DNA of 64,000 nucleotides from Macrostomum lignano. Taxonomy: Eukaryota. The DNA is taken from contig NIVC01002920.1 in the NCBI GenBank assembly GCA_002269645.1, positions 1-64,000 of the forward strand. Reading direction: 5' to 3'. A model generated the notes under the pieces. It did not search any database and was not told the DNA's origin. It worked only from the letters and a program-made list of their open reading frames with translations. The position numbers and the translations under genes were made by a program. Within the stretch, counting starts at the first letter, position 1. Each line of letters begins with the position of its first letter. Positions 34,778 to 64,000 of the stretch are shown one piece after another.

Positions 34778-36068
34778 TCACTCGCAGACAGCGTACACGT
34801 CGAACTCGTCGTCATAAACGCCGATGAGGTCGTCAATGCCGCCGCAAGTGCCCACCATCGTGCCAACAATGGTATCGATAGCACTTTTCGCCTTGTCAAT
34901 TTCTCTCCTTTGTTCGTCAGTCGGCGGAGGTCCGACATTCTCAAGGCCGAAGGTCGCTTTGGAGGCCTCTACCAGACCCCGCAGCTGGTCAAATTTGGCT
35001 CTGGCGGCTCTCTGGTCATCAGAAGCGAGCGCTGCTTGCAGGGCGGCCGCCTCCGCCCGCTTGCGAACTGCCAAAGCGGCCCAGTCGGCCTTCGGTGTGG
35101 CGGAGTTCAACAGGTCCTGAAGGCGCTTCTTCTCCATGTCGAGAAACTCAATCAGACCCACGATGAGGCTGTTCCAGGGCTGCAGTGAAGCGTTGACTCG
35201 GTCAGCCTCTGCAGTTTGTTGCTGCACCCGATCGACCAGATTCGTACAATCGGCCTTGCGTTGAATTGATTTATTAAAGTTTGAAATATTGTATAAAAAG
35301 TGTAAATAAAGACTACTTCTGAAATTCAAAATTGCTAACTGTTGAGTCGACGTAAAAAATTCCAGTATTTGCAGCGGCAGAATGCTCTCGTACTTGACGT
35401 TTCATGCAAAGCAAGCAGAACAGGGAATAAACGTCAAACATTCCACTAGAGGCAAATTGAAACGACTTTAATGCTGACTTTTACCTCGAACTGCATCCAA
35501 TGAATGCTGAAGTGCCGGCTGCACAGCCGCCTGTCGCAGTGCCTGCACTTGACGAAGACAGGGATGGTGCACTGGCCAGCTTCGTCCTTCCACCGGCAGG
35601 TGGCGCCCTCTTGGGGTATCAGGTGAGAGGAACTGATGAGCCTCTCCATTGTGCTGTTCTGTAGCGGTTTGGTGCTAAGCTGGCTCCTGCATATTGGACA
35701 AGTGCTGGCTTCCCGAAGAAGCCGCTCGTAGCAGGGACGGCAGAGCGTGTGATGACTCGCACACACGTAGAGAGGGTCAGTGAAAGTTCCCAGACACACA
35801 GGGCATTCTAGGTCTTTGTTAGTTTCTTCACCTGATTAAGATTGGATCGAATTGTAGAATGAGCAAGAATCTTTTGAAAAGCACCAATTATTCCACAATA
35901 AAACGACTAATCTTATATATTATATTATAGCAGTGCATTGTAATACATAGTAGGGCCTTAATATAGTGCAAACCAATTTGAAAACTAACAAATCAGCATA
36001 AAAAATTTACCTGCATCGGTTTCATATTGACTGTAACAAAGGTTCAAATATACTCTTGAATCAGCCAT
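34778..36068 (-). CDS. TRIM-like RING / B-box-like / coiled-coil protein, copy 2
   Basis: Exons (-) 36068-36011 (tentative), 35831-35485 and 35254-34778, phases consistent. CPVCLGTFTDPLYVCASHHTLCRPC...CPIC; CRHCDRRLCSRHFSIH; FE|ADC phase-0 junction. Confidence 0.8.
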
Positions 36069-37435
36069 GCCGTAATTTCTCAAACACCAACAAACTGGAG
36101 ATTAAAAAGTCGTTTTCAATTTTTAACCAAAAGTTTAAACGGCCCTAAAACACTTATGTAGGAATAAAAAACAAGCAGTCCACAGGATGTACCGTCTTTA
36201 TTATTCTTGCACTTTGCAGAAGCTTTTTTGCTTTTGATAGATTGTACGTACGAGAAAACAATACTTGGATTTGGAAACTGTTCGTTTCTACTCGTATTTT
36301 AGTTTCTATTTTTAGAGCAGATAAAGTAGCTTAGTTATTAATATTTATTTCGCCACCTCAGTACTTTATGCAGACTGCATGTACATTCAGATTCAGTGGC
36401 TGCAATGCATTGGAAAAATAAAAGAAGCATCCTTAAGCATTTTACCACCATATAACTTCATTGCCAAAGTGGCCTCGAGGTGGCCTCGTGTCAGCCAGCG
36501 ATACGGTTATACCTGCAGTTATCGCTGAAGATGGGTTGGATAGAAAACTGTTTAATGTGAAGTAGAGGCTGTGGTAAAAAATATGCTTGAGAAGGCAGTG
36601 CGACCTTGTTGAGAATTCCGTTTCTTTTAATGCAGTGCTGTTGTCATTTAAAGATATTTTATGCATTCAGAGTACATTTTTGTGCAGCGGAGGGCAGTTG
36701 CAATAGCATCTGTTTTTATCGGAGAGGTACTTTATTTTACATCTGCCTTTTATTCCTACAATTTACGAGCGTATTATCTTAGCCTTGAAGAAACGCTTCT
36801 CATCGTACAATCAAACTCTGTAGCTGCCACTTTTGGCTTTCTGATTTTTGGTGCTAATTACGGAGGAGCAATGCTTTTGGCTTTGCCAAAGCTAGTTCTG
36901 TTTAGCTAATCTCTCCAGTTCACGGTGGGCTCTTCTTTGAGCCTGAAGTTGAACATCAAAAAAGCTTAGTGTCAAAAATAAAAGAAGCGTCCTGTCAAAC
37001 ATAAGACCAACGAATTATTGCTGAGCTGTAAGGGCTCATGGGGGAATATCGGAAATGCCGTGACTTTCAGCAACTTACGGTTAAAGATAGGGTTAAAGTT
37101 AGGATTAGGAACCCTTAGGGTTAAAAAATGAAATGATGTCAAGACTCATGAGGGAATTGCTGAAATGCTGTGGCTCGTAGGGGTTGCTCAGATGCCAAGG
37201 GTCAATTGCGAGTTGATGGTAGGCCAAGCTAAAGGTAGATCAACGGGAGAGTTGGGATGAAGCCATGGCCTTAATGGAGGCTTTGATGCCTTTGGTAAAG
37301 CTGCTTTGATAAATAGGTCGCCTTTTCTGCATTAGAAAGCATACGAGAAGCTTCTGCAAAGCTTCGCTTTTGTGAAATGAAATCAAACGATTAACATAAT
37401 TTATAAGTTAATTTAGACAAGATGTTTTACTTTCT

Positions 37436-37709
37436 AATAATAATAATAATAATTGATTACACCTGCCAGATGTGCAACCGACAGCTCAGCCGCAGCTATT
37501 GCGCGGCGCATCTGAAGGCTGCGTACGGCTGTTCAGTCCAAGGACTGGGGCAGCTAATGCTGGCACCCATTTTACAGCTGGGTAAACTGAAGCAGTGCAG
37601 AGTTAAGTATCTTGCTCAAGGACACAAATTGTTCCAGTGGGATCAGAAATGGAACCCCCGACCTTCAGGTCGTGGGTCCGACGCTCTGACCACTAGGCTA
37701 CTATCCCCT
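37436..37709 (-). mobile_element. SINE family A, copy 3
   Basis: Head ggggatagtagcctagtgg on the minus strand, CORE-like middle, (att)n tail. Confidence 0.8.
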
Positions 37710-39499
37710 TTTTATTGAATATACTTTCAAGAAAAAAGAATATTTAATATCTATTTTTGTATTCTCCACCAGCCTTTATTCTCCACTAGATTTACTTGAT
37801 CTTGATGGAACTTGATCTGGATACTGCAGTTGACACCCATGCAGCTTTACATGTACAGCCAGAATTGTAACGAGAATGTTGCAAATTTTTGTAAGATTTA
37901 TTTGTTTCCTGTTTAAAGCTATAGGCTCGGTTCATTATTTGAATTCAGATTCAGAATCCGGTTGTGAAACTCAAATAAGAAATCTACATGTGGCAGCTGC
38001 TTTACTTGTGAGAGTTTGCATTCGGCATCGGGTTAGTGCGACATGCAAACGTTTATATTAGCAGCTGCTAACTCTGATATTTAACACCGATCCAGACCGG
38101 GCTAACTAAAATTTTTCCCAGCGCGTTCACTTTTTTGTGGATGCTGCAAATGGAGGTTCTATCCTATATTTAGTTTCGATGGGGAGGCGGCTTGCTGAGA
38201 TACCAAGGGCCAATTGGTATTTGTTGTTAGGTCAAGCACAAAGGGAGAGTTATAGGGGAGGGGGCAAAGGGAGGCTTTGATGGCAAAGCTCGCGTGGGTG
38301 ATGCTTTATTGCCCAAAGCATCATTTCCCTAAAATACTAACAATAGCGACTGTACAAGATCATGGGGAAACTTCTAAAATTCTAAAATCCATTCTTTGTT
38401 GCCTCATCAATATAAACGCTGATTGCTAGTATATCTTTCTAATAATTAGCAAGGCCATGCAAAGCTAAATTTAAAGATTTTAATAACCAAAAGAACCAGA
38501 TTTTGTAATGTCTAAAAAATCTGTTACGAATATTGTGAAATGTCTGCCCTGTCTTGACAGAAAGGAGACAGAAAAACTAATAATGGTGCTACTTTCGCAG
38601 ATCCTTGTAAGTAGTATAATAGATATCACTACATTTACGCATCCAAAGCATTAAACTTGAAAGTGGAGCAAATCTTCATTGTCCAGTCAGAGGAAAGATA
38701 GAAGAGGTCAGAGGTGAGAGATGCATTTAATAGAGGTAAGAGAGAGAGAAGAGAGACCGAATGAAATTTATATGCAACATTCAGCTTTTATGATTAGTTT
38801 ATAATTTATAGTTTCACTAAATTAAGAGTTGACGTCACCAAGAACTGATACTGATACCTGCAATAATTTTGCGATTTCAGGGCCGGTTTTACTGGCTCTG
38901 TAATCGGTTTTAGTGACCGGGGCCGGTGCCTCTGCCAAAGCTCATAGAGGTGAGGTTTGGGTGGGGGTGAGGGTGCGGTGTGTGCAGTGTGCGTTGTGTG
39001 GGGTGGTGGGGGTTGGGGTCACGCTGGCCCTTTTATTCGCGCCTTCTGCCCCTCAGTGTTGGCATGCTTGGCTAAATCTTTTTTCTGTGTGCTTGCCTTT
39101 GCATTTATCCTCTGCTTTTATCCCTCTGATTTTACCCGTTTGCTTGTACGAGCTAACACGTTGATTTCGAGTCAAATACACTCGCTTCGCTGGGTTCGTT
39201 TCGCCCGCTTTTTCGTCTTCTCCTTGTTCCTTTCGGCCCGGTTGGCTAAATTTTATCTTTTCACACCTTGACTGTTTTCATCTATCTACGAGCGTACTAT
39301 CGTAGTATCTGAGAATAATCTAATCAAAAAGACGAAACATATACATGTAGGAAAAATAGGCAATGCACGAGGTTAAGACAAGCATATGTAGTTTCTTTGT
39401 CACATGTGAAAACTGCTTTCCATGCGCACACTTACGCTTCTTTTTTCGTCCAGTGTTGCCTAAACGAATCTTAAAACAGAAACGATGCCCCGGTATGAC

Positions 39500-40900
39500 C
39501 ACAGCAGCGCCCTCAACGCGTCCTTGAAGCCGTAGCCGTCCTGCAGGTGCGTCTACAGGCCGACGACTTTCAGTAATGGTTGAAGCGCTCGAATGCAGCG
39601 TTGCCTTGCGGGTGGTAGTGCCGCGACTGGCGGTGCTGGGTGCCGCAGCGCTGGAGGAAGTTTTTGAAATCATCGGGCATGAACTGCGACCCGCCGTCCG
39701 TGCTGATGCTCTTTGGGAGTCCCCAGCGGCTGAACCACGTCGTTGGGGCGTTGATCACATCAGCTGTGGTCCCTGGGGACATGCAGGCTGCTTCTGGCCA
39801 CTTCGAATGCGGGTCGTACAGCACCAGAATGAAGCGACATGAGTTCGGCGCCGAATGCAGCTCCCCGAAGATGTCGAGCTGAAGCTCCTCCCAAGGTCGC
39901 GTCGGCCACTTCGTCGGAGTCATCAGCCAGCACCGTTTTGGATGTCTTGAAGTTTTTCTCGCTGAGCAGGCAGGCCTCGCAGTGCCGCACGAACTCCTCG
40001 ATTTGGCTGTCGATCTGCAGCCACCAGACCGAGTCCCCGCAGTGCTGCTTCATTCTGCTCACTCCGAGGTGCTCAAAGTGGGCCAGCTGCAACGTCGTCT
40101 TTCTCAACAACGCGGGGATCACCGCGCGCAACCCATTCGCCAGGCACTTGCCTTCGTTCCAGACTGTGAGCTGCTCCTTGATCCGCCAGAACGGCTGCAG
40201 CTCCGGCCTAAAGCTGCTTGATGGAACTCGGCCAGCCCTCAAGCGTCATCTCGATCGCCTGGCTGATCACCGGGTCCTGTAGAGATGCCTCAGCCAGTTC
40301 GCTTGGGCTCACGATCTGCAGCGCGCCAGACCGCAGGACGGCGTTCACCTGGAGCTTCGCTGGGTCCTCCTCGCTGCTGTCGTTGCGCGCGCCGTGTTGC
40401 GACAAAAAGTCCGGAACGGTGTTCTTTTCCCCGGAACGTGGCAGACCTGGAAGTCGTACGCGTGCAGGCGGTCGGCCCACCGGTGCAGTCTTAATGGCAG
40501 GTGCCCGCTGCCCTGAGCCGTCAGCGACGTAGTCTGCGCTTGATGGTCCGTGTGCGACTCAAATCTCCGGCCGAACAGGAAATAGTGCCACCTCTCATAA
40601 CTCTCATGCCTCTCGCATGCCAATGCCTCTCTTTCAGACGCGGAGTCGCTGACAGGGTTCGGGATGCAAACGCAACTGGTCTCCGGACGCCGGCGCAGTC
40701 TTCTTGAAGCAAAACTGAGGTCATTGCAGATTCGGATCTTACCGTCAGGATTTGGGACGACCACCAGATTCGAGATCCACTCGGATGCCTGGATCTCCAC
40801 GACGATCCTGTTGAGAGCCCCATCCTCCAGAGCGACGCCTACAGCTGAACCCTGTTGGGAAGCTGCGACCCCCAGGTCCCCAGTAGAGCTCCCGTCCCGT
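39500..40900 (-). mobile_element. Degenerate Ty3/Gypsy pol fragment (RT remnant - RNase H - Zn-binding - integrase)
   Basis: ISNLVVVPNPDGKIRICNDL; FGRRFESHTDHQ; RLHRWADRL; AH..HLGVSRMKQ...VWW...C..C; PWEELQLDIFG...ISTDGGSQF...YHPQGNAAFERFN. Frameshifted, in Gypsy RT-RH-IN order. Confidence 0.9.
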
Positions 40901-42551
40901 GTCCCAGGGAGACGCAGGAAAATGACAGAGCAGAACTCACGAGCTTCCGTGAAAAAGCCGATGCAGTTCGCACTTTGCTATGGTAGACAAGTAAGTTTGT
41001 TTTGAAGTAGCCAACGATAGGACCAAGAAAACGCAAGGCCGCGGCTGCCCAATAGACAGCAAATTTATTATATTATATTAACTGATATATAATATATATA
41101 ATATATTATTAATTAATAATAATATATTATTAATAAATAAGCTCCATAATAATATATTATGGAGCTTATTTATTATATCAGTTATATCAGTTATAATATA
41201 TACTTTCTTTATAATATTATAATATATATATAAGTTATAATATATTTAAGGTACTTTCTAATGTATTTAAAAAGGTAAACTAACTCAGCTAGAGGCTGGA
41301 TGTTTTTAAAGTATCTCACAGTTAAAAATATAAATTTCGGCACCCTTCTCTACTGCAAGTCGTCTCCGCTGCACATACATAAACTCTTACTCTTCTTGAA
41401 CTTTTAAATTTGTCATTTATTCTTACCATTTTGCATCTTTGTCTTGATGAGATGATTTCACCTTACATCATCTAGCCTCTACAAGAGTTATTTTACCTTT
41501 TTAAATTTCATTACAAATTTCGGAGAACTGCTTTTTTGGTTGAGCGTGTGCAGTGTTTGCTATTGCTAGTTCTCCTAGCTAATGCTTCTTTGATAAAGTG
41601 GGCTTTTCTCTGAGCCTGAAGGTAAACGGAGGGAGCTAGTTAATAAACAAGCTGTATCACTTTGTACGCCTGATCTCTCTGGCGCTTTATGCTGGGCCTT
41701 TTCATCTCCTCGCTGCATCCGTCTCTTCAGGGCTACGAGTACTCTAAGATAGATTAAGTTCAACAAAGTTCAACATTGTTTAAGAACAATGGTTAATGCC
41801 TACACAGCCTGGGGATCATCGTTTTACGCACAGACTTTCAAAATCAAGAGAAAAGTACGAATGCTCTTACAAGAAAACATTTAGCTCGTGTTTAGTCTTG
41901 CAATCCATCTTATAGCTACGCTTTTTTGAAACACAGAATAGATAGAAAAAGACAAATAGTGGTTGGTACTTTTGCATATCCTTGTAAGTAGCATGATAGA
42001 TGCTTTCGCTGGGTTTCGTAGTAGATTTGCTCACGTATGCGTGAGGAAAATGTTTTGCTGGAATTTTTATATTTTAGAATTTTACACGTACTAAAAATTG
42101 GATACTCAAACATATATTTCAGCAGTATAGTTAAAATATGGAAGAGCAGGGCAGCTATTGAAACAGTAAACTACACTGGAATAAATAATTTACGGGTTTA
42201 TAATAAGTGTTTTATATGCATAAATTAGTTTTACCTGTGTGCAGTTGCAGCTACACTCATACAAAAACTAGCTACTTAGGAAGTTTACAAGTTAAAATTT
42301 TATTTGCTTCAAAAAGTGAGCTTGAGTTTAGGAACTGAGGAGCCTGGTGCATTTCTAAATGTCACTGAAGTCATTGTGGAAATAGCAGACAAACTGCTAA
42401 ATGGTGCTGGGGTTGGTGATAGTGAGGAAAAAATCTACATTCCTGAAACTCCTCCGACTTCATCGGGAATGCTGTAAGTTGTATGTCCTGAGTTAACTTC
42501 TTGCTTTTTTGTCATGGCTTTGAGACATAGCAATTGTTTGCTGCAATAGGA

Positions 42552-43406
42552 TTATTCTGGGATGCCACCGCAAGTTTTAGTTGCAGTGTCGATTACGGTG
42601 TCCAGCTTTGATTTACAAGCTTCAATTTCCTTTTTCTGCTCACTGGTTGGAGGCGACCCGAAAGCTTTCGATTCCAGCTTGGGCGCTTCAGCAGTAGCAG
42701 CTTTCAGCCGGTCTGAGATGGCTTTGGCTTCCTTTAGTTGGAAAGATTGAAGGGATTTTTTCAGGCCCTCCGTCTCAGCCCCTCGGGAGGACCCGGCAGC
42801 TGCCTGCTCCAGCCTCTGCTCTGTGGCTCTCAGCAGCTTCTCCAGGTGCTCTTTTTTCTTACCGATAAATTCGATAAGATTTTTTATTTGAGCTTTCCAA
42901 GGCTGCAGTTTAGCGCTGACTTGTTCGCATTCCTTTGCGTCCTTCTCCACTGTGCTTAACAGGTTCAGGCATTCAGTCTGAAATATAAGCGTTCCGTTTT
43001 ATTAATTTGAATTTGAATAAATATTAAATATGTTAGCTTCCATTACTTGAAACTTCAACCGATGATCGCTGAAGTGCACATCGCAAAGATTCTTGTCGCA
43101 GTGACCGCAGTTGACAAGGACCGAGTAGGAGCATTGGGTTTCGCCTTCGCCTTCGCCTTCGCAGGTGGCGCCGAGCAGCGCTTTCGAACAGAAAACCTTA
43201 ATGAGCTTGGCCATGGCGGCGTCCTGCTTAGGTGTGATCAGCTTCTCTCGGCATTCCGGACACTTTGCTGCATAAGGGGTTGTCTCTAAAATGCCTCTGT
43301 GGCATTCCCGGCACACGGTGTGGTGGTTCGGGCACACGAAGCAGGGATCAGTAAAAATGGTTTTGCACACTGGGCAGCGCAGGTCTTTTATGTCTACTGA
43401 GCTCAC
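42552..43406 (-). CDS. TRIM-like RING / B-box-like / coiled-coil, copy 3 (start codon not evident; possible pseudogene)
   Basis: Exons (-) ~43406-43047 and 42977-42552 (69-nt intron). The two ATGs of copies 4 and 5 read CTG and GTG here. Confidence 0.7.
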
Positions 43407-43700
43407 GTCTAAAACTTTAGGGGTCAGGTATTGAATAGCGATTTTAAAATCCCAGTTAACGCTGTATTATATTCACATTCACCATAGTATTTAGAAACTA
43501 AAAAGGATAAAGATTAAGATTATTGTGCGGTCCGAAGGTGAGTCCAGTCACAAGAGAGGGACTAAACCAATTAATAAAATGCTGCATTCACATTTTATCT
43601 AAGCTTTGTGTCACAAATTGCGTGCGTGACACGTGATAGAAATCGTCTTGAGGTATCCTTGACCTCGTCGAAAAGCAACCAATTAGTGATGCCAACCGTA

Positions 43701-44914: not shown

Positions 44915-45413
<499 letters not shown>

Positions 45414-46602: not shown

Positions 46603-46795
46603 CAGGGGCGGATTTAGCCCCCCCCCATCCAAAGTAGCTTGACCGAACATATTGCGCCCCCCAAAAACCTAAACTTGCGCCCTCTACACTTGATTTTTCG
46701 CCCCCTATACGCATTTTTTGCGCCCCTAGCTTAAAAATTGGCGCCCCAAACTTGGACCGCCCTCCCCCCAAAATGAAAATCTAGATCCGCCACAG
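46603..46795. mobile_element. Non-autonomous hAT-type MITE with perfect 8-bp TSD
   Basis: TIRs caggggcggatttag / ctagatccgccacag; TSD gtgatcga at 46595-46602 and 46796-46803. Confidence 0.85.
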
Positions 46796-47083
46796 GTGAT
46801 CGAGCACAGCAATGCAGGTCCCAAAGCGATTCGGAGGCGCATTATTCGAGTATATTGATTCGAAAATTAAAAAGAAAAAAAATTGAGCGGCAGCAGCGCC
46901 CTCTCGCGCTGAGCAGAGCAACATATAAATAAAGCACACGCACACCTGGGGTTAGAGGTGTTAGTCAGAGCACGTACAGGTACCTACAGCGCCTAAAACA
47001 AGTACAACGCGATAAAAAGGGGAGCAGCGAGGCAGGTCGCTCCGCCATCAACAATGGGTAAAGCCCACTTGCTTCACCCGCCA

Positions 47084-47920
47084 TCAGATCATCTCAGGGT
47101 AAATATCTGTCGCACTCTATCAGATCATCTCAGGGTAATTATCTGTCGCACTCTATCAGATCATCTCAGGGTAATTATCTGTCGCACTCTATCAGATCAT
47201 CTCAGGGTAATTATCTGTCGCACTCTATCAGATCATCTCAGGGTAATTATCTGTCGCACTCTGTCAGATAATCTCAGGGTAATTATCTGTCGCACTCTAT
47301 CAGATCATCTCAGGGTAATTATCTGTCGCACTTCATCAGATAATCTCAGGGTAATTATCTGTCGCACTTCATCAGATAATCTCAGGGTAATTATCTGTCG
47401 CACTCCATCAGATCATCTCAGGGTAAATATCTGTCGCACTCTATCAGATCATCTCAGGGTAATTATCTGTCGCACTTCATCAGATAATCTCAGGGTAATT
47501 ATCTGTCGCACTCCATCAGATCATCTCAGGGTAAATATCTGTCGCACTCTATCAGATCATCTCAGGGTAATTATCTGTCGCACTCTATCAGATCATCTCA
47601 GGGTAATTATCTGTCGCACTCTATCAGATCATCTCAGGGTAATTATCTGTCGCACTCTGTCAGATAATCTCAGGGTAATTATCTGTCGCACTCTATCAGA
47701 TAATCTCAGGATAATTATCTGTCGCACTTCATCAGATAATCTCAGGGTAATTATCTGTCGCACTTCATCAGATAATCTCAGGGTAATTATCTGTCGTACT
47801 CCATCAGATCATCTCAGGGTAAATATCGGACGCACTTCATCAGATAATCTCAGGGTAATTATCTGTCGTACTCCATCAGATCATCTCAGGGTAAATATCG
47901 GACGCACTTCATTAGATCAT
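47084..47920 (+). repeat. 36-bp minisatellite (atcagatcatctcagggtaattatctgtcgcactct)
   Basis: About 23 units; produces the repetitive ORF 47054-47968. Confidence 0.95.
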
Positions 47921-48163
47921 CAGATCATCATCATCTTCGGCTGGTGCAGCATAAACGTCTATCCCTAGGCCCAAGCATCGCAACTACCATTCTTCGAAGT
48001 TATTTATTTTGGGATATTTGTCAGCTGAAATAGAGACCGCTTACTCAGCAAGTTAAGAGTTCGCGGACCGTTAACCCAATTAACCCGAGCCAGACGCTGA
48101 GTAATTACCGGTTTCTAATCAATTTTTCTAAGTTTTTGGGAGCCAAAATATGGCAAAAGTTTT

Positions 48164-49094
48164 CTAATGCGAGTTTGCTTTGGGGCGAATAAACCCGCCC
48201 AAAAAACCGGTAAAAAAAAATATACGAGCTACCGAGCAATTTTCACGTGTAGTCTCGATTATGGTGCTCAGCTTTGCTTTACAAGCTTCAATTTCATTTT
48301 TCTGCTCCTCGGTTGGAGGCAACCCTAATTTTTGCGAGTCCAGCTTTGGCGCTTTAGAAAAAGCAGATTTCAGCCGGTCTCCGATGGCTTTGGCTTCCTT
48401 TAGTTGGTCAGATTGAAGGGCGGTTCGCAGGCCGTCTGCCTCAGCTCGGCGAGAGGACCCGGCAGCTGCCTGCTCCAGCCTCTGCTCTGTGGTTCTCAGC
48501 AGCTCCTCAAGGCTCTTTTTTTTCACATCGATAAATTCGATAAAACTGGCGATCTGAGCTTTCCAAGGCTGCAGTGTAGCGCTGACTTTGTCACATTCCT
48601 TCGCGTCTTTCTCCACAGATTCCAACAGGTTCTCGCATTCAGTCTGGGAAGGAAAGCGTTCTGTTTTATTAGTTTTCGTGTTAATACCTGCTAAATACTT
48701 TAGTTTACATTACCTGAAACTCCAATCGATGCTTGCAGTAGTGAAACTCGCAAAAATACTGATCGCAGTGACCGCAATTTTTGGAGACTGAGTTGGGGCA
48801 CTGGGTTTCGCCTTCGCGTACCTGGCAGGTGGCGTCGGGTGGCGGTTTTGAGTGGAATTCTTTGACGAGCCTGGCCATGGCGGCGTGCTCCGTCGGTGTG
48901 CAAAGCATCTGTCGGCACACCGGACACCTTGCGTGTCCGAAAAGGTGCGTCTCCAAATGGCGTTTGTGACATTCGCGGCACAGAGTGTGGTGGTTCGGGC
49001 ACACGAAGCACGGATCAGTAAAGATGTTTTTGCACACCGGGCACTTCAGGTCTTCGTCCTCTCTTGAGCTCATATCTAAAAGTTCACGGGTCAT
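48164..49094 (-). CDS. TRIM-like RING / B-box-like / coiled-coil protein, copy 4
   Basis: Exons (-) 49094-48714 and 48643-48164 (70-nt intron, FQ|TEC). CPVCKNIFTDPCFVCPNHHTLCREC. Confidence 0.85.
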
Positions 49095-51244
49095 CTGTTA
49101 ACTAAGTATATTAAAATCCATGTTAACATTCTAGAATATGCTAAGCTACTATGTAGAAACGGAGAAGGGCATAGATGAAGAGTATTATTGAGCGGTCTGA
49201 AGGCAAGTCCAGTTCCTAAAGAGGGACCTATCCAGTTAATCGATGTATAGCACGAGTTGAAAAGTGGTTAAAGCCTGCTCCAGCTAATCAGCTTGTATGT
49301 GCCATAAGTAATTTCCAGTACTGTATAGATTTGTCTATCGCTTCGCTTCGCTCGCCTCGAGACCATTATTTGCGACCTCTGACTTTCTGACCACAGAATG
49401 CGCATTATAAAGCTATTATCTTATACTTAAAACTCCCTTGGTTAATGCAACTGCACATGAAGATGCAATGAAGAAAATTAAGAAGCGCACCTAAAGCATT
49501 TCACCACCCTTTTACTTTATCGCCAAGAACATACCGGACTGTATTTTCAATAATTCTGCAGTCAAAATTTCAGACAATACAGCTTGTAGGAGTGTTTTTA
49601 CTACCTTTGGAAAGTGACCTTCCGCATTTCGATTTTGCGTAGTGAGCCATTTAGTTTTTGTCTGCGGTCCAGGTCGTTGCGGAGAGCAACTAAATTTTTT
49701 GCCAGAAAAACTAATGCGAAGCAGAGGCTTTGGTAAATGAAATGCCTGAGAAAGCGGTGCAGCCTTGTTTAGAACTCTGATTCTGCGTCCAGCATTGCTA
49801 TTGTCGCTTCAAGCTATTTTATGCATTCAGAGTTCATGTATGTACAGCAGAGACGAGTTTGAAGCAGAGAAGAGTGACGAAATTTATATTTTTTATATTT
49901 TTATCTTTGAGGTACATTATTTTACATCTGTCTTTTATTCTTACCATTTAGCATCATGGTCCTTGAAGAGACGATTTTCATCTTGAAAGCAACCTCAATA
50001 GCCGCTACCTTCGCTCCCCTGATCTTTAAGTGCAAATTACAGATGAGCAATGCTTTTGATTGTGCTCATGTTTGGTTTAGCTTTCTCGTAGTTCTGATAG
50101 CTAATTTCTCCACTTTAGAGTGGGTTTTCCTCTGAATCTGAAGTTAAATGGTAGAGTTGTTAATATACGAACTACATCCGTCCGTACGCGCGTGATCTCT
50201 CTAACCTTAAATTCTCTATATCTGTCTGGCCCTCCTATTCCCGCTGTATCCGCGTCTCTTCAGGACTTCTCTAGACTGTTAAAGTTTAACAAAAATGAGA
50301 AATTATTTCAAATCAGCCGGACTAGATAAGACCAGTCTAAGAAAAGGATGTGTTTAACAACAATGGTTGATGCCTTCAGCCTGGGAAACATCGTTTCAAG
50401 AGCGGACTGCTTGAATCCTATAAATTCTGCCAATTTTACAGGTACGAGTGCTCTAACAAGCAGACATTTAATCTCTTTGTCCGTCCTGTGGCTAAGTTTC
50501 TTAGAAACACAAAATCGCCGGAGAGGTGGTCTTGCGGCTCTCCAGGCTCGAATTTATATCCATCTATTCTAATAGATAGGCAAAACAGTACGGAGTGTTG
50601 ATAAAAAGCAAGCGTAGCACATATTATCTTTCTGTCATATCTAAAAATATTTGTTACGAATGATTGTGAAATATCTGCTTTTTTGACAGAAAGGAGACAG
50701 ATAAAGACGAGTAGTGGGTGCTACTTTTGCATATCCTTGTAAGTAGTATAAAAATACTGCTACATTTATGCAGCCAGCGCATTTAACTTGAAAGTGGGGC
50801 CAAATGCTCTATTATCTAGCTAACTATGGTGAGAGAAAAATATTTGAGATATGAGAGATGCAATTAAGGGAGGCTGTATGATTTGTTTAAAATATATAGT
50901 TCTGATTGATGAAGAGTTGACGTCACCAATAACAAAAAGTGCAAAGTTGGAACTTTGCAGTAGGTTTTACTCTTTTAAGCTCTTACTCTTTCGTATACGC
51001 TATTATATTCTGTTTACTAATATAAGTGTAACATGTGCATAGCCCTTTACATGAGATGTAATTCGGTGCAGTTACAATGCTTAAAAAACCGGCTACTTGG
51101 TATGAAAAATTCCACTTCAGTTTAGAAACTGAGGAGACTGGTGCATCTCCACATGCGATTGAAGTTATTCAGCTCAAATCATTTCGAATTTCAAAATATA
51201 TTAAGCAGCCCTTAATAGAGGGAAGCTTCTAAAAAGAAAATGGG

Positions 51245-52256
51245 TTAAAACATTGGTGGCACTGGGGAACTTAAACTTGATCTACGGGATCTACGGCATC
51301 CATCGCATTGACAATCCAACTCCGTCCTGAATGCTGTATGTGGTCTAGAAGATCTGGCTGTTTTGCTGTACTTCTTTTGCGGTGCGTGAAATAATTTTTT
51401 GACACCACCGCAAATTCGTGTTGCAGTCCCGATTATGGAGACCAGCTTTGCTTTACAAGCTTCGATTTCTTTCTTCTGCTCATCGGTTTGAGGCAACCCG
51501 AAATCTTGCGACTCCAGCTTCGGCGCTGCAGCAGGAGCAGCTTTCAAGCGGTCTGCGATGGCTTTGGCTTTTTTTAGCTCACCAGATCGAATGGAGGCTT
51601 TCAAGCCGTCTGCCTCAGCTCGACGGGAGGACCCGGCCGCTGCCTGCTCCAGCCTCTGCTCTGTGGTTCTCAGCAGCTCCTCCAGGCGCTTTTTTTCCAC
51701 ATCGATAAATTCGATAAGACTGCCGATCTGAGCTTTCCAAGGTTGCAGTGTAGCGCTGACTTTGTCGCATTCCTTCGCGTCTTTCTCCACAGATTTTAAC
51801 AGGTTGTCGCATTCAGTCTGGCAAGGCAAGCATTCCGTTTTATTAATTTTCGTATTAATACCTGCTAAATACTTCAGCTTAAATTACCTTAAACTGAATC
51901 CGATGTTCACCAAAGTGCAGATCGCAAACATTCAGGTCGCAGTGACCGCACTTGACAAAGACTGAGTTAGGGCACTGTTTTACCCGGCAGGTGGCGCCGG
52001 GCGGCGGTTTTGAGTGGAATTCTTTGACCAGCTTGGCCATGGCGGCGTGCTCCGTCGGTGTAGAAAGCGTCTCTCGGCACACCGGACACTTTGCGGGTCC
52101 GAAAAGGGACGTCTCCAAATGGCGTTTGTGGCATTTGCGGCACAGAGTGTGGTGGTTCGGGCACACGAAGCACGGATCAGTAAAGATTTTCATGCACACC
52201 GGGCACTTCAGGTCTTCGTCGTCTCTTGAGCTCATATCTAAAACTTCAGGGGTCAT
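51245..52256 (-). CDS. TRIM-like RING / B-box-like / coiled-coil protein, copy 5
   Basis: Exons (-) 52256-51888 and 51817-51245 (FK|TEC). Confidence 0.85.
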
Positions 52257-56421: not shown

Positions 56422-57335
56422 CTATATTTCATACATAGCCGCTGCATATATCGTATCATCTTCAAAATCATCACGACAGCTCACACCTCCGCAAATTCCT
56501 GTAGCGGTCCCGATTAAAATATCCAGATTTGCTTTACAAGCTTCTATTTCTTTTCTCTGCTCATCGGTTGGAGGCCACCCGAAATCTTGCGAGTCCAGCT
56601 CCGGTGCAGTGGCAGCAACTTTCAGTTGATCTGCGATGGCTTTGGCTTGCTGCAGTTGGCCAGATCGAAGGGAGGCTCGCAGGTCGTCTGCCTCAGCTCG
56701 GCGGGAGGACCCGGCCGCTGCCTGCTCCAGCCTCTGCTCTGTGGCTCTTAGCAGCTCTTTGAGGCGCTCTTTTTCTATATCGATAAATTCGATAAGACTT
56801 TTGATCTGAGCTTTCCAAGGCTGCAATTTAGCGCTGACTTGGTCACATTCCTTTGCATATTTCTCCACAGATTTTAACAGGTTCTCGCATTCAGTCTGGG
56901 GAGAGAATAGTTTCATTTCATTAATTTTCGTGTCAATACCTCCTGTACTTCAGCACAAATTACCTGAAACTTCAATCGATGATCGCAGAAGTGCAGATCG
57001 CAAAAATCCAGGTCGCAGTGACCGCATTTGACAAAGACTGAGTTGGAGCACCGGGATTTGCCTTCAAACACCTGGCAGGTGGCACCGGGCGGCGGTTTCG
57101 ACTTGAAATCCTGGACGAGCTTGGCCCTGATGGCATCCTGCTTAGGTTTGGAAAGCATCTCTCGGCACTCCGGACACTTTGCGGGTCCAAAAAGGGACAT
57201 GTCCGAAATGCGTTTGTAGCATTCGCGGCACAGCGTGTGGTGATTTGGGCACACGAAACACGGATCAGTAAAGATGTATTTGCACACTGGGCACAGCAGG
57301 TCTTCGTCGTCAGGTCGCTTTTGAGCTTCCATCAT
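56422..57335 (-). CDS. TRIM-like RING / B-box-like / coiled-coil protein, copy 6
   Basis: Exons (-) 57335-56964 and 56895-56422 (FQ|TEC); start MMEAQKRPDDEDLLCPVC. Confidence 0.85.
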
Positions 57336-60300
57336 GGACGAATAGCCAAGGGAGCTCACAGTTTCCAATAATAATTGGTGCAATTGCACTTTTTAGCTGT
57401 GCGACGATTACACTGTTAAGAAAAAAAATTTTGAGCTGACTTGTTTTATACCTTACTGTTTTCGTAATCAAAAATGACGTGCGAAATGTTTCGTTACATA
57501 TGAAAACCAGGCCAACCTTTAGTCTGTCAGCCATGCAACTCAGTTTTCTAAAGACTGCTTGAAGTCATATAAGAAAGGACGCTAAACAAAGTACATTTTA
57601 TGAAACCAACCAAAGTATTTTGATGCGAGCTATTAAAACCCCTTGATAATCTTTATTTTAGGACATTTTTCGAATCGCAGATAAGCTCTATCACTCTTCA
57701 ATCCAGAAAAATTCTATAATTAGGACTTTGATTTTTTATTTGTTTCAGAAAAGTAAATAAGAAAATTCTCAGTTTATAAAAAATGCAGCAGTAAGCATAA
57801 TGCAAAATTAGCTATGACAAAATGCCTATTCTTGTCTACACTAAATTTGACGCAGTGTAGCAAACTTTTGAAAATTTTTGCCTTTAGCAACTATTTTTTC
57901 AATAGATCCGCGTTAGTAGTATGTTTTGCTTTAAACTGCTTTTTTATCTAAGTTCAGTTGATGAGGACGCACTTTTTTCCAAATTTCACGCTCGCACATG
58001 GGTTCAAAACTTGCTAGCCTACTAACAGCATGCTATGGGCGTTTTTTTTCTTTTTCTTTTGTATTTTTTCTAGAATTCATCCTAGTAGGACTTCTGTAGC
58101 TATATTAATTTGCCATACTTGTAGTTATGATAACATAGGCGCGGTTTTTTGCTGCTTTTGGGTCATAAATCATTGCTTTTGAGCTGGTCTGACAGCCACC
58201 TGCGCCTCACTCAGTGCTGGGGCTGGCGCCAGATGATCTGAGAGGATGCGAATGGTAGCTTTTTTCTCATCATTTTGACAGTCCATCAAGATTTATGAGG
58301 TTAGGGCCTATTTTTCGTGTTCACTCAAGCGTGTGACAGCTATGCGTTTTACCCATAAAAGTACGTTGGGATTAGCGATTAGCGATTTATCTTCATTATC
58401 TTCACTTTCTACTTAATAAGAGCTTTCTAATGTATATTTTTTCATTAGTTTTTTTTCGATTCTACGCGGAAAGTCATAAATCATTTTGTTGCGATTTTTA
58501 TTGATTTATGGCCGCATCTGTCATATATTTACGACCCCGAGGGAACTGATAGGATCTCTTGGTCACGTGACTTTGGGTGGCAACAAGCTCAGCCGATCAG
58601 AAAATTCGACGTGCGTTGTAACAAATCGGCTCAGCCAATCAGAATGGAGGTGTTCCATTATAACTAATTGCGGTCCAGTTGGCGGCTTTGGCCGGCGTTT
58701 TTGGCCGGCGCGGACCTCAACTGGCTCGGAACTTCCTGCTACTTGCTCGGGCCCAGTACACGACCGTCGTTTCTTGATCCCCGGATTGCGACTTCCCCCA
58801 TCATCATCAAGGACGAGTCCCCCTGGTCGTCAGCAGTAAACATCAAAGTTAAGAGCATCACCTGCTAGCTATCAGCGAGGATTGGGACATCAGCATCATC
58901 CCGGGTCTACAGCTGCGAAGCACTAAGCCGATTCGGTCGCTGTGGATTACCTGGTCTCCGCCTGTTGAGTTTCTGATTGGTTGGGTGAGAGGCTACCTAG
59001 ACTTGCTTGATTTGGTGATTCCTTATCTGTCCCCTATTTCAGTAGCTGGATTAGGCGCACACTTTTGCTCATTTTATTTAGTAGTGCTGTTACTGAGGCA
59101 GAAATCATTCAATAATACTGATAGTAGTCTGAGACTCCAATTCAATCTGAAGTGTGAGAAGATCTAAGGAGAAGGAAGGAGAAGGAGAATCCGACAGTTA
59201 TTTTTATCGGTTTTATTTCTTTGTTCGCCGATGGCTCAGATGAGTAGCTAAGCTAGTAGGCGCCGGTCACAGTGGACCAATGGCAAGGCAGTTCTCAATC
59301 GATCAATCTATCAAATCAGTGAGCAAAACTGCCAGAAGTGCAGAATCGGCGCCAGAGATGTACTTTGTGCACTCTAGGTTCGCCAAGCGGCTCGGGTAAT
59401 GAATCATGCGGTCCCTGAAGTTGGAGTTGGCCTATCATCAGGGCTATGAGAGGCTGGTTGGCGCGTTGAAGGCCAAAAGTACAATTCTTTGTATTTAGCA
59501 ATGTAATAGTACATGTAGCTACCCCATAGTCTCGCCATTGCAAGAATCCCCTGCACAAGTCCCCTCTGTACCTGCATGGCCAATGCGATCTAGTCCCAGC
59601 AGTGTCCCTTAACATCGGCTATGACTTCGAGATTGACAGCAAAAAGACACTAGTTGGCAGGTAAGTGCAAAGCCCCCTCTAATCGGAAGCCCGATTTCGA
59701 GAGTCCCGGTGTGGTGAGCCAGGACGCACGGGCTGGTGGCAGCGAGTTAGCTTAGTCTGCGGATTAGCTAATTTCTACCTTCAAAATTCTCACTGCTTGT
59801 CTCTCGCTGTCCCTCTCTTAGCTATAGGACCTAGACTGCTCGCCACACGATCAAGCTACCATGGGGCTGACCATCTGACAGGAGTGGGGGGCCAGGACTC
59901 TAATTTATTTATTTCTGAGACCTAAGGCCCGAAGGCTTCCCCACAAGGGAGCTGAAAGGCCGAAACCCATCACAGCTAAAAATGTCCAAAAACGATTTTA
60001 TCGAAATGATTAAACCTAATTTTCGGTTAAAACCTAATTGTTCAAGTGAAACAGTGCTGTGCACGAGTTCATGGGCATGAAACTTTAACTTAACTTCTGC
60101 TAGTGTAATAATCTAGGGATTTCAGATATGGACTTATCAGGGACTTAGAATAATACGAGAATAAGGGTTTATGTTAAAACGTATCTAGACAAAAAATTCA
60201 TTGAACTCATAACTCGCTATTGTCATTAACTTTTCTTAGCTCAAGTGTCCCTTTTCGGGGTATCAATGAATGAAATTTCGTCTCAAATTTTCGTAGTCTA

Positions 60301-60494
60301 TGGTAAAACAAGTTCCAACCAAGTATGCTTTTATATTTTAAAAGAAATTATACTTTTATAGGATTATTATGATTTAGTTTTCTTCTACGCTTTCGTACTT
60401 TTATAATTTCGTAACAGTAACGCAACAATTTTCGGCTTGTTATTTTAGTTCATTCAATCAGACGACGTTTTACTTTTTCCAAGCTACTGATTAC

Positions 60495-60808
60495 CTTGTA
60501 TTTTTGGACCATGGACACCAGCATCCGATTGGCAGCGGTAAACACGGGATCTCCGATAATGTTTACCTCCTCACAGCGTCCGCCATCTGTCTTTCAGAGG
60601 ACTTCGGGATTCCTTCTCGTTCAATTTCTTTAAGTTCCTCGAGCGCATCTTCGCTTAGGTCCTGAATCTCTTCAGCGTCTAGTTGTCGAGCGAACTCGCC
60701 ACTCAATTCTTCCACATAGCGGGTTGCTGACTCTGACGACACCCAATGCAACTCCTCTGTTGACAGACCACTGATAAGTTGGTCGGGCAGATTCGCATAG
60801 TTCAACAT
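60495..60808 (-). mobile_element. Possible Crypton / DUF3504-type tyrosine-recombinase N-terminal fragment
   Basis: DLSEDALEELKEIEREGIPKSSERQMADAV, then frameshifted NIIGDPVFTAANRMLVSMVQKYK. These resemble the IPxNT and DPxF..sn motifs of Crypton-type proteins, with the intervening part missing. Recalled pattern only. Confidence 0.4.
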
Positions 60809-61475
60809 TCTTAGTCAGTAGTTGATTCGACAGACAGAACTTTCTAGAATCGTTGCTTCAAAACGCGGCTCCATAGCCCCGTCCTCTCGATTAATCCGAG
60901 TGGTTAGTCTATGGCACAAAGATTTGCCTATCCACCGAAAAAAAGCCTTCGACCATAGACTTTCTCAACTTTCTGCCTATCTCTAACATAGTGCCCGCAA
61001 ATTTCCACATTGTTACCCGCAAATTTCTTGCATTGATTAAGTTAGTGACAATCTTATTGACATAGAATTTTGCTAGTTGTCAATGCGGAATTATATGTTA
61101 ATGTTATATTGTTGCGACGCATGCATCATTCGGGGCTCAAGAATGATCATACAAGAAAAAGATATTATATGTTTTATGCTTTTAAAAAGCTCATTAAAAC
61201 AAATTTTAAAAAGCATCTTGTTCATGCTTTATAGAAGTTATAAATTCCTACTATATTATCAGGTTGAAATGTTGCATAATCATCATATTGGCATTTAATT
61301 TAATCGAACTATATTTTAAGCACGGCCGTGCTGATGCAAATTTCACACTGCAGGTAAAAATAGTTAAATAATTTCTTTCAAGTATTCCCTGGCTGCATTC
61401 GAAATGGCAGTTGTCATATATATCGAAGTTTCATTAGTTCGCATTGCTTTTGTCTTGTCTCTCTAGCCTCCATAG

Positions 61476-64000
61476 TCAGGGTACAAAGCGACGCAGAATC
61501 TGCCTGAACGGCTCCTCAGGATGGCCTCTACCAGCGGCCGAGAACCTTCCAGTCAGTCGAAGGACGCCGCTAGGCGTGAGTATCGTCGAGTCGCCGTGCA
61601 CCGCCTCTAGAAACGGTCGCTCCATCTCGTGTCCCAACTCTGTCGCTTTTAGATCGAATTCCTGACCGGATTTTACCGGCGGAGACACCTTCGGCGTCTT
61701 AGTCAACGAATTCAAGTTGTGAAGTCCTCGACGATTCAGTCTGTTGAAGGCGACACTGGCCACTTTTAAGTCGCCAGTGTCCAGAGCTTCGCGCAACTCG
61801 ACAGCATCGGCAGCCGCGGAAGTTGATAGGGCAGCTCCGCGCGAGGAATCCGCCATCTCGGCGGCCATAGCGGAGAGCGCATCAAATCGCTGCCGCTGAT
61901 GCTCCAGGGCATCGCGACAGTCGGCAAAGAGGCGACTCCACTGCTGCAGAGCCGACTGGCGCTGCTTGGCTGACTGGTTTGCCGACTCTGCCGCTCTAAT
62001 TAAAGTGCTGGACTCCTCCTGAAAGAAAATTTGACAAGTTGACATGTAGAACATGAACACTAATTGCAGCAATATCCGTTGTAAACCGTTGCTTTGTTAA
62101 AATTTGAGCGAAAAATGTTAGTTTTAGTTTTGGAACTTTAGTTTTATGTAATAATAATTAATTACCTCGTGCACCTGCCCAAATAGGCAGATGTGCAACC
62201 GACAGCTCAGCCGCAGCTATTGCGCGGCGCATCTGAAGGCTGCGTACGGCTGTTCAGTCCAAGGACTGGGGGGGGGGGGGGGTCGCCACACGCACCCTCA
62301 ATTACCCCAGCTAATGCTGGCACCCATTTTACAGCTGGGTGAACTGAAGCAATGCAGAGTTAAGTGCCTTGCTCAACGACACAAATTGTTCCGAGTGGGT
62401 TGAGAATCGAATCGAGGATCGACCTTTCAGTCGTGAGTTTCGACGCTGTAACCATTAGGCTACAACCCCTTTGTTGCAGTTTATTAATATTTGTTGTTAC
62501 TTTGGTAAAACAATAGGAATCGGAAATCCTATTATAGTTTAGAATTTATAGCTTTGCATACGAGTATAAGTAGCAAACTACGAGCATAAGGTATAAATAC
62601 GGTATTCCACCCAAATAATTTTTATTGTCAAAGCTGTCAATCAGTTATAATTGTGTTCCCCGTGTAAAGTCAACAGATCATCAAGTACTCCTAAAAAGAT
62701 ATGTAAAGTCAGCTTAATGAAAGCCAATCTTAGATTCATGAAAGGTCTAGAAATGGAGGATCAAGGCTGAAAGCATTGCAGCAAACCTGGGAGAAATCCG
62801 AATGACCATATTTTTTAAGGATTCAAAATGGTCTAGCGCTTATTAAGGTATTCAATCGCTGTTTATTAAAAAAGTGTTTGTTATGCTACTGATTGAGGGA
62901 AATACCAATGAAAGAAAACATACGGCTATTGATACGGATCGAACTGCTACAAACCGATGACTACTTCTACCGATTGATCTGTTACAAACCAATGACTACT
63001 TCTACCGATTGATCTGTTACAAACCAATGACTACTTCTACCGATTGATCTGCTACAAACCAATGACTACTTCTAGCGATTGATCTGCTACAAACCGATGA
63101 CTAATTCTACCGATTGATCTGCTACAAACCAATGACTACTTCTAGCGATTGATCTGCTACAAACCGATGACTAATTCTACCGATTGATCTGCTACAAACC
63201 GATGCCTACGTCTACCGATTGATCTGCTACAAACCAATGACTACTTCTAGCGATTGATCTGCTACAAACCGATGACTAATTCTACCGATTGATCTGCTAC
63301 AAAACAATGACTACTTCTACCGATTGATCTGCTACAAACCGATGACTACTTCTACCGATTGATCTGCTACAAACCGATGACTACTTCTACCGATTGATCT
63401 GCTACAAAACAATGACTACTTCTACCGATTGATCTGCTACAAACCGATGACTACTTCTACCGATTGATCTGCTACAAACCGATGACTACTTCTACCGATT
63501 GATCTGCTACAAAACAATGACTACTTCTACCGATTGATCTGCTACAAATCAATGACTACTTTTATCGATTGATCTGCTACAAACCGATGCCTACATCTAC
63601 CGATCGAGGACTACTAAATTTAAACAACTATAAAAGATTGAACGACCGTACAGCAATCATGCGCTTTCGTTAAACTAACTCTGAACGTTTTAACTTACGA
63701 AGTTACGATTATAACCCACCTTAAATCGCATCTGATCGTTAGCGTAATGCATCTCGCACAGGTTCCGATCGCAGTGCTCGCACCTGGCAAATACCTGCTG
63801 CAGACAGGCACAGTTACCGGCACCCTCTCGAGCGTCGCATTTCGCGTGATGAAGCCACTGCTCCCGCCGACGCCAGCTGTCTACCACGCCGCGGACGTGA
63901 GGATTCTCCAGCGGACGATCGACCAGACGCTCGCGACAAATCGGACAGCGGGCCACCTCGCCAGACGAGTGACATTTGGTTGCGATAGCCTGGTGACAGC
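61476..64000 (-). CDS. TRIM-like RING / B-box-like / coiled-coil protein, copy 7 (5' end beyond window)
   Basis: Exon 64000-63720 reads CHQAIATKCHSSGEVARCPIC...CEHCDRNLCEMHYANDQMRFK|gtgggt; exon 62018-61476 begins after tttctttcag with a helical segment. Confidence 0.75.
62149..62470 (-). mobile_element. SINE family A, copy 4 (intronic)
   Basis: High similarity to 37436-37709; head aggggttgtagcctaatgg on the minus strand. Confidence 0.8.
62945..63605 (+). repeat. 35-bp minisatellite (acaaaccgatgactacttctaccgattgatctgct), intronic
   Basis: About 19 tandem units. Confidence 0.95.

Follow-up and report, generated by a model that had tools for sequence, protein, structure and literature searches.

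A tandem array of probable TRIM-like E3 ubiquitin-ligase genes in the flatworm Macrostomum lignano

Background

Some human TRIM proteins lack a C-terminal domain. The fast-evolving TRIM clusters of vertebrates (TRIM5/6/22/34 and the finTRIM and btr genes of fish, which belong to "group 2") are tandem arrays with birth-and-death, copy-number differences and relaxed or heterogeneous constraint; they carry a PRY/SPRY (B30.2) domain for target recognition, in which the positive selection is located, and experiments have demonstrated their immune roles. Group 2 genes are absent from invertebrates, and few expansions of TRIM genes were found when fly, worm and Ciona were surveyed (Sardiello et al. 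2008, PMC2533329). According to the same work, 12 of the 18 TRIM genes of C. elegans encode the tripartite motif alone, that is RING plus B-box plus coiled coil (RBCC); the B-box is the domain that defines the family, and a lone B-box is by rule of type 2. Here we analyse positions 1-64000 of contig NIVC01002920.1 of the free-living flatworm Macrostomum lignano (assembly Mlig_3_7, GCA_002269645.1), a stretch that we call the window. It is likely that this region holds most of a lineage-specific tandem array of TRIM-like E3 ubiquitin-ligase genes, mostly RBCC-only.

The array would combine a TRIM-type C3HC4 RING and post-RING helix, one derived type-1-like B-box and a long helical region as in the TRIM coiled coil, and two apparently older members that flank the others, c1 and the inverted c9, would have an extra C-terminal domain. 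This architecture is already known and the expansion of a gene family is ordinary in kind; we regard the array as new, unnamed members of the TRIM-like superfamily whose single B-box is somewhat unusual. The RBCC-only proteins of C. elegans resemble it in size, ~250-320 amino acids (aa), and in being lineage-specific invertebrate sets. However, the single B-box of the flatworm cluster appears type-1-like with a widened first knuckle and not type 2, and the genes form one tight tandem array between two long paralogues, with no orthologues detected outside M. lignano. The vertebrate clusters resemble it in layout, turnover and constraint, whereas the flatworm copies have no PRY/SPRY domain. If our reading is right, this would be a clear flatworm case of TRIM-like expansion, and a single type-1-like B-box with a stretched first knuckle could stand in for a type-2 one, which is relevant to how strict a definition the tripartite motif can have.

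Results and discussion

Gene structure of the array

Seven paralogues, named c1 to c7, were found in the window, all of them on the minus strand, and neither six-frame translation nor tblastn with each copy gave additional fragments. The tblastn E-values between copies ranged from 1e-7 to 1e-103, well past chance. Common to all copies are a C3HC4 RING and a second zinc module, then an intron in phase 0 that starts with GT after F[Q/K/E], and a helical exon of ~140-180 aa. The GT donor stands immediately after F[Q/K/E] in 7/7 copies, with an in-frame AG acceptor at the homologous residue, which agrees with the intron described in an initial annotation of this DNA; the introns of c3-c6 are ~70 nucleotides long. 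The same annotation had proposed diverging tandem copies in one orientation with the order RING, B-box-like module and coiled coil, and this was supported by the seven minus-strand members and by a family profile that is collinear with true TRIMs. The array continues beyond 64 kb with a short gene, c8, and then the long, inverted c9; at least nine members are present on NIVC01002920.1 and the short genes are flanked on both sides by long ones (c1 and c9). A prokaryotic or viral origin was ruled out by the GT-AG introns and by the identity of the window to the flatworm contig. This contig, of 83,061 bp, matches window positions 38164-59650 (21.5 kb) at 100% and with equal coordinates, and a spliced model of c6 is 68-95% identical to M. 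lignano proteins, P0003 among them.

The first long gene, c1 (19803-21729, minus), is BOX15_Mlig013468g1 (protein P0004, 444 aa) and has four exons, at 21712-21729, 21205-21609, ~20048-20803 and 19803-19955. When database proteins were mapped exon by exon, P0004 and the protein of c4 (P0003) matched the window exactly. The short, RBCC-only gene c2 (34778-36068, minus) has a first exon with the start codon at 36009-36068, according to the UniProt model P0009, an exon for the RING and the B-box-like module at 35485-35829 and an exon for the helical region and the stop codon at 34778-35254; P0009 also has an alternative 28-aa 3' exon at 33894-33977. The next short copy, c3 (42552-43418, minus), has its RING and B-box-like exon at 43047-43418 and its helical exon at 42552-42977, with the stop codon 3 aa past a conserved CGG motif. 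The first exon of c3 has no in-frame ATG, the two ATGs of c4/c5 being CTG and GTG in c3. This copy is absent from the GenBank genes of the locus and is modelled solely within a chimeric protein, P0008, and its coding status seems uncertain. As a side observation, the UniProt model P0008 (806 aa) is a wrong fusion of c3, a fragment of a long terminal repeat (LTR) retroelement and c2.

The gene c4 (48164-49650, minus; exons 49606-49650, 48714-49076 and 48164-48643) is BOX15_Mlig019194g1 (P0003, 295 aa); it has lost the CGG motif, and its tail is therefore divergent. The reading frame, start codon and splice sites of the short copy c5 (51245-52256, minus; exons 51888-52256 and 51245-51817) are all intact; its first B-box loop has 4 residues, it has a ~50-aa unconserved tail, and none of the GenBank gene models of the locus covers it. 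The annotated 281-aa gene c6 (56422-57335, minus; exons 56964-57335 and 56422-56895) ends in an acidic/aromatic tail (DDFEDDTIYAAAMYEI), and its counterpart on a duplicated locus, P0001, is 95% identical. The RING and B-box-like exon of c7 (61476-64000, minus) reaches from 63720 past position 64000, so that the window holds only part of it, as had been noticed initially; the helical exon lies at 61476-62018 and the intron holds a tandem repeat of a 35-bp unit, x19 (62933-63604). The full-length c7 (319 aa) is known from the near-identical P0010 (Mlig027655g1), where the RING part outside the window reads CSRHHTLC. Further along the contig, c8 (P0157, Mlig004532g1, 314 aa) occupies 66919-69069 on the minus strand and c9 ~70.0-72.0 kb on the plus strand, the latter being ~88% identical to P0154/P0011 (Mlig013276, 446 aa).

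RING finger

Every copy has the motif C[PAS][NSR]HH[TS][LV]C, and all eight RING zinc ligands are invariant. Thus, the motif spacing given in the initial annotation holds for all copies, whereas its label "Sina-type" does not fit: the nearest RINGs are those of TRIM proteins and the Pfam Sina_RING scores of the window copies are sub-threshold. The motifs CP[VI]C and CPxC[R/K] are kept in 9/9 members; we take CP[VI]C, and the basic residue that follows the last cysteine, to be the positions that contact the E2 and prime the ubiquitin, as in established structural work on RING-E2 complexes. Among the copies, c2 (as P0009), c5 and c8 pass the threshold of Pfam's generic RING models, and the others stay below it.

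When the Protein Data Bank (PDB) was searched with a profile built from nine members of the family, the top matches were the RINGs of TRIM21, TRIM34, TRIM32, TRIM5, TRIM31, TRIM2 and TRIM69, and a motif following the RING, P-x-x-N/D-x(4-5)-L-V, aligned with the helix LRPNRQLANMV of TRIM21. AlphaFold2 modelled the c1 RING with a predicted local distance difference test score (pLDDT) of 82-95 once TRIM sequences had joined the alignment. Foldseek on this model gave as best matches the TRIM21 RING-B-box structure 5olm and the RINGs of TRIM21, TRIM69 and TRIM25. The structures of TRIM21, TRIM25 and TRIM69 (6fga, 5olm, 5fer, 6yxe) are the best profile and Foldseek matches to the N-terminal 70-130 residues of the cluster, with which they share the post-RING helix and the basic residue after the last cysteine. 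On the other hand, the identity is 22-33%, the B-box of TRIM21 is of type 2 and the fold match goes through a predicted model that was built with TRIM sequences. Judged from these profiles and models, the RING of the family is best read as TRIM type, and "Sina-type" is not its best description.

The genes might instead form a separate RING family, SIAH/TRAF-like or other, that came to resemble TRIMs in B-box and coiled coil by convergence, which we consider very improbable. For several copies the best Pfam score is the one for Sina_RING, with 22-27 bits in the window copies against a cut-off of 29.3, and c8 alone passes it (30.1). Nevertheless, the Pfam scan found no SIAH zinc finger, Sina substrate-binding domain or TRAF-type zinc finger in any copy, and there was no SIAH structure among the PDB sequence matches or the 50 best fold matches listed, where TRIM RINGs came first. 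Membership of the SIAH family was rejected on these grounds. The alignment of the post-RING motif with the TRIM21 helix also speaks against a separate family, and the rest of the evidence on this point comes from the second zinc module and from the relatives of the cluster.

Second zinc module and relatives of the cluster

The second module has the same ligands in every copy, namely C, C, C-x-H-C, C and H, up to the last position, which is H or D. An atypical B-box had been described here with a first gap of x6-10; the invariant ligands were found as described, but the gap between the first two cysteines actually goes from x4 (c5) to x11 (c1). The D at the last ligand, which the initial annotation had assigned to the two outer members c1 (HYSDD) and c7 (HYAND), is indeed there; however, c8 has it too, the array does not end at 64 kb, and the distant paralogue P0014 likewise ends in D.

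The comparison with hhalign gave a probability of ~1% against canonical B-box2 modules and of 93.4% (E 2.5e-7) against B-box1-type modules, the latter over 23 columns only, corresponding to the C-x-H-C-[DE]-x3-C-x2-H-x3-H part, and with a comparison set that was taken from the TRIM hits of the family's own profile search and is not fully independent. The B-box1 pattern used was C-x2-C-x7-12-C-x2-C-x4-C-x2-[CH]-x3-4-H. The single module of the cluster fits the type 1 pattern (C-x7-C-x2-C-x4-C-x2-H-x3-H/D) and not type 2, and in this the cluster breaks the rule that a lone B-box is type 2 (PMC2533329). Its first knuckle is C-x4-11-C instead of the usual C-x2-C, and there are intermediates among the M. 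lignano paralogues, with C-x2-C in P0037 and C-x4-C in P0014. From this ligand pattern we regard the second module as a derived B-box with the character of type 1, its first knuckle being widened.

The family profile was searched against 1.84 billion representative proteins and gave seven matches below 1e-30 and sixteen below 1e-10. The strong matches were cluster members or fragments of them, and those that were looked up all came from M. lignano. The family thus appears, so far, only in this species, where "species-specific" is an upper bound, as the protein sets of other Macrostomum may be missing from the library. The weaker matches were true TRIMs with zf-B_box, TRIM_CC, PRY/SPRY or NHL domains. 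The collinearity with TRIMs extends over at least 200 positions, from 3 to 213 in the case of P0017, which has both a Pfam B-box and TRIM_CC, and in the PDB the profile is collinear with TRIM72 (7xyz) over positions 6-198.

The closest relatives outside the cluster are two other M. lignano proteins, Mlig005321 (P0014, E 1.7e-14) and Mlig032067 (P0037, E 2.7e-8). Both of them have a RING, a single B-box1-like module and a coiled coil in the same order, and P0014 shares also the H-x3-D ending together with its C-x4-C knuckle. They differ from the cluster in their NHL-like beta-propeller C-termini (Pfam NHL at threshold), in their location on other contigs and in an identity of only 17-25%.

A separate RING family would be in keeping with the first knuckle not being C-x2-C, with the broken rule on lone B-boxes and with the lack of Pfam B-box and TRIM_CC matches. 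The match of the C-x-H-C-[DE]-x3-C-x2-H-x3-H part to B-box1-type modules argues against it, and so do P0014 and P0037, whose knuckles are intermediate or normal and which have NHL-like C-termini in the manner of TRIM-NHL proteins.

Helical region

The first AlphaFold2 model, that of P0001, has an 85-residue helix (117-201) directly after the zinc module and return helices at 205-218 and 235-259, with a pLDDT of 80-90; the model was made from an alignment of 9 sequences only and its RING part is unreliable. The arrangement of helices in the c1 model is similar. In these models the predicted helical region looks like the protomer of a TRIM coiled coil.

Several structural results weigh against the TRIM-like reading. 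Pfam gave no match to TRIM_CC and none to zf-B_box in any copy, the model ANCHR-like_BBOX reaching only E 0.1, and the second module has just seven obvious ligands, which leaves the two-zinc fold of a B-box unproven. Foldseek with the P0001 model found no PDB match at E <=0.001 (the best was 0.76). Both AlphaFold models are poor overall, with a mean pLDDT of 54-60, and a good model of the RING required TRIM sequences in the alignment; the dependence of the B-box1 comparison on the family's own hits is a point of the same kind.

The identity of the predicted coiled coil is 67-79% among c3-c6 and 23-28% between c1 and the short copies. Mixed dimers within the young clade c3-c6 would be plausible from these values, and mixed dimers with c1 would not. 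This touches a further explanation, which the initial annotation had favoured: a defence-type (antiviral or innate-immune) cluster whose RBCC-only proteins heterodimerise with the domain-bearing c1 or act as decoys for it. We regard this as improbable. With an identity of no more than 23-28% between the coiled coil of c1 and theirs, there is poor ground for mixed dimers of the short copies with c1. The short copies also retain every catalytic feature of the RING; a decoy could do without these features, so that the short copies look like ligases themselves and not like decoys.

C-terminal ends

The GenBank gene models of this assembly were built solely from transcript assemblies guided by RNA-seq, with gene boundaries set by trans-splicing and poly(A) reads (PMC5730564). 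On NIVC01002920.1 there are such transcript-derived models for c1 (444 aa), c4 (295 aa), c6 (281 aa) and c8 (314 aa), and on the duplicated contigs for the counterparts of c7 (319 aa), c6 (282 aa) and c9, as well as for a paralogue, P0002 (316 aa). The models of the short members all stop at the short reading frames. Furthermore, a tblastn search with all known tails, the C-terminal regions of c1 and c9 and the NHL-like ends of P0014, P0155, P0037 and P0083 revealed no domain exon downstream of any short copy; the sole yield of this search for hidden exons in the window was the alternative 28-aa 3' exon of c2. No Pfam match to NHL, SPRY or C2 reached the threshold in any copy, with every exon and the full models scanned. 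Since the transcript-derived models end at the short frames and there is no downstream domain exon, we read c2-c8 as RBCC-only, with 280-320 aa and short tails that are not conserved, as the initial annotation had proposed for the short copies.

Past the conserved CGG motif the copies can no longer be aligned at the DNA level, and the downstream DNA that c3 and c5 share is read in different frames. Therefore, the conserved protein ends with the helical region and the tails vary freely. Acidic/aromatic tails are found in c2, c6 and the paralogue P0002. The description of copies 2 to 6 as stopping soon after the coiled coil is right in general, with the exception of c5, whose frame runs ~50 aa past the conserved end. 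For c7 an extra length of ~60 aa had been reported; once aligned, c7 extends only ~30 aa past the others, and the remaining length corresponds to an insertion in the linker and to a motif shared with c8, EMERPFLEAVHG. The identity of c7 and c8 is 58% over the 36-residue stretch of this motif as against 41% overall.

The extra C-terminal region of c1 has ~180 aa, and that of c9 can be aligned with it at 23% identity. The initial annotation took c1 for a "C2-bearing copy", which our results do not sustain. The only Pfam match of this C-terminus was B9-C2 with E 0.16 and 12.4 bits, against a cut-off of 27; the PDB profile search with the c1/c9 region gave nothing relevant and the homologue search only M. 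lignano fragments; and the AlphaFold pLDDT is below 35 over residues 263-444 of c1. As the C2 label has no better match behind it than this B9-C2 one, the proposed partnership of the short copies with a C2 protein loses further ground.

We observed that the gene adjoining the far end of the array (370 aa, at 565-2405 of stretch L004, that is ~76665-78505 of the contig, minus) has the Pfam domain RPGR1_C, which is C2-type and RPGRIP1-like, and that on a duplicated contig a 1290-aa gene with C2-C2_1/RPGR1_C follows there. The profile and homologue searches with the C-termini of c1 and c9 did not return these RPGR1_C neighbours, no direct comparison having been made.

Selection and turnover

In a tree made by neighbour joining, the deep branches are those of c1, c9 and the pair c7/c8; the young clade has c2 as its sister and consists of c3-c6, the copies of most recent origin, with a synonymous divergence (dS) of ~0.25-0.45. 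According to the simplest history that this tree suggests, the C-terminal domain would have been lost first and local duplication would have come afterwards. The array would have grown via unequal duplication of units of ~1-1.6 kb, c3-c6 being the youngest, with gain, loss and rearrangement of copies still going on.

The ratio of non-synonymous to synonymous substitution (dN/dS) in pairwise comparisons is 0.2-0.35 for c2 versus the young copies. Sliding windows along the young clade gave ratios of non-synonymous to synonymous differences (pN/pS) of 0.06-0.17 in the RING core and 0.13-0.27 in a central segment of the coiled coil (LRATEQRLEQAAAGSSRR), and of ~1 or more in the N-terminus, loop 2 of the RING, the linker before the last helix and the tails. 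The windows with pN/pS >1 are short and noisy, and no region has clear positive selection. Between c7 and its duplicate there are 6 substitutions, 1 non-synonymous and 5 synonymous. As read from these ratios, neutral decay is excluded for the family as a whole, because the pN/pS of the RING core is 0.06-0.17, although the picture is mixed. The comparison of paralogues by dN/dS, which the initial annotation had suggested as a check, thus speaks for more than neutral decay.

Large recent duplications are known in the M. lignano genome (PMC5730564), and two further contigs carry versions of this locus that are 94-98% identical. On NIVC01001491.1 (L002) c5 is reduced to a ~310-bp piece of the helical exon, and c4 has two 1-bp gaps in homopolymer runs, its annotated product being 184 aa long; these frameshifts may be errors of the PacBio assembly. 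On NIVC01000210.1 c3 is truncated and the stretch of c4-c6 is replaced by an inverted segment with a partial c5-like copy and the paralogue P0002, which is 66-70% identical to c3-c6. The stretches that differ in gene content lie at 15707-16614 of L002 and 4600-7650 of L007. The differences in gene content among the three locus versions are direct evidence of birth-and-death and rearrangement, which had been proposed from the window; recently duplicated copies of the genome have already diverged here, with one gene copy deleted, one truncated, one frameshifted and one segment inverted. We note in passing that these versions could be useful as a marker of the divergence of M. lignano subgenomes, or of assembly errors.

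The short copies could also be mostly decaying, truncated duplicates of a long ancestor of the c1/c9 type and have no function of their own, as pseudogenes or as relics that are still transcribed. We consider this unlikely, even though a number of observations point that way. The pairwise dN/dS among c3-c6 is 0.5-0.7, which indicates relaxed constraint, and some sub-regions are near 1; the long forms are at the base of the tree; the tails after the CGG motif are unrelated, those of c3 and c5 lying in different frames of homologous DNA; and the duplicates of c4, c5 and c3 are frameshifted, mostly deleted and truncated respectively. Some copies may indeed be dead, as c3 has no start codon ahead of its RING and, like c5, is not among the GenBank gene models; the upstream open frame of c3 has no in-frame AG acceptor for an ATG supplied by a spliced leader, so its start is not rescued in this way. 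Relaxed constraint and possibly dead copies also count against a set of working ligases, and so does the state of the expression data: RNA-seq reads map to several of the 95-98% identical loci, so that expression of each particular gene copy is unproven, and no expression records for six gene identifiers of the cluster were found in the supplements of the M. lignano papers searched or in a full-text literature search.

Against decay, the zinc ligands and the E2-contact residues are all kept in every copy despite a protein divergence of 30-75%, and the splice sites are intact in 7/7 copies. The low ratios of the RING core and of c2, and the 1 non-synonymous versus 5 synonymous changes of c7, are those of constrained genes. 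Moreover, transcript-derived models exist for c4, c6 and c8 on the contig and for the c7 counterpart on a duplicated contig, and the two frameshifts of the c4 duplicate, being in homopolymer runs, are possibly errors.

Possible function

If the array is one of TRIM-like ligases, the short proteins would be RING ligases themselves, recruiting E2~ubiquitin by the surface formed by CP[VI]C and CPxC[R/K], and they would probably dimerise via the coiled coil. The choice of target might come from the variable loops, the surface of the coiled coil, the tails, or mixed dimers of the very similar young copies.

Regarding a role in defence, the tandem layout, fast divergence and copy-number differences recall, by analogy, the antiviral TRIM clusters of vertebrates (group 2, PMC2533329); the variable loops with pN/pS >=1 and the presence of the family so far in this species only go in the same direction. 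However, no expression or functional record supporting such a role was found in the literature or the M. lignano supplements searched, and none of the loops has clear positive selection, the windows above 1 being short and noisy. There are also other lineage-specific tandem families in the window, 7TM receptors and probable secreted proteins, so fast turnover may belong to the region and not to the function of these genes.

A more elaborate version, to which we give only slight credence, would be a flatworm-specific recognition system. RBCC-only ligases would use the first B-box loop, which varies in length (4-11 residues), the variable surface of the coiled coil or the acidic/aromatic tails against shifting targets, for example viruses or retroelements, either singly or in mixed dimers of young copies, and the long copies would add an undescribed beta-rich domain. 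This would be a SPRY-less analogue of the vertebrate antiviral TRIM clusters.

Neighbouring elements in the window

The seven-transmembrane (7TM) receptors form a tandem series of intronless open reading frames (ORFs) of rhodopsin type on the plus strand, at 5060-6034, 11407-12348 and 16796-17770; two of them were scanned and matched Pfam 7tm_1 with E 1e-16 to 1e-18. The series also includes an apparently frame-broken copy at 9241-10447 and a fragment near 15358-15714, and none of these is among the called genes where the locus overlapped. Between c1 and c2 there are three paralogous ORFs of ~300 aa, at 25769-26659 (minus), 27197-28108 (plus) and 31749-32660 (plus), which have hydrophobic N-termini and are probably secreted; the two that were scanned had no Pfam match. 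An annotated gene for an acidic protein of 81 aa, with no Pfam match, lies between c6 and c7 (60563-60808, minus).

The LTR-retroelement fragment included in P0008 is a frame-broken piece of pol between c2 and c3 (39320-41005, minus) with the Pfam domains rve, Integrase_H2C2 and RT_RNaseH. Tandem repeats occur between c3 and c4, namely (CTAT)n x125 at 44915-45413 and a 36-bp unit x23 at 47083-47921, and the latter array yields a spurious ORF of 304 aa (47054-47968). The simple-repeat tracts at 22688-23389 and 24811-25684, open in several phases (CRY..., SIL/SVL..., DTV/GTV...), are almost certainly non-coding micro- or minisatellites. Finally, an ORF with a pair of EF-hands (2308-2703, plus; Pfam EF-hand_7, E 2e-7) looks like an exon of a larger gene, and it is preceded by GC-rich repeat tracts at 501-2233 that are open in several frames.

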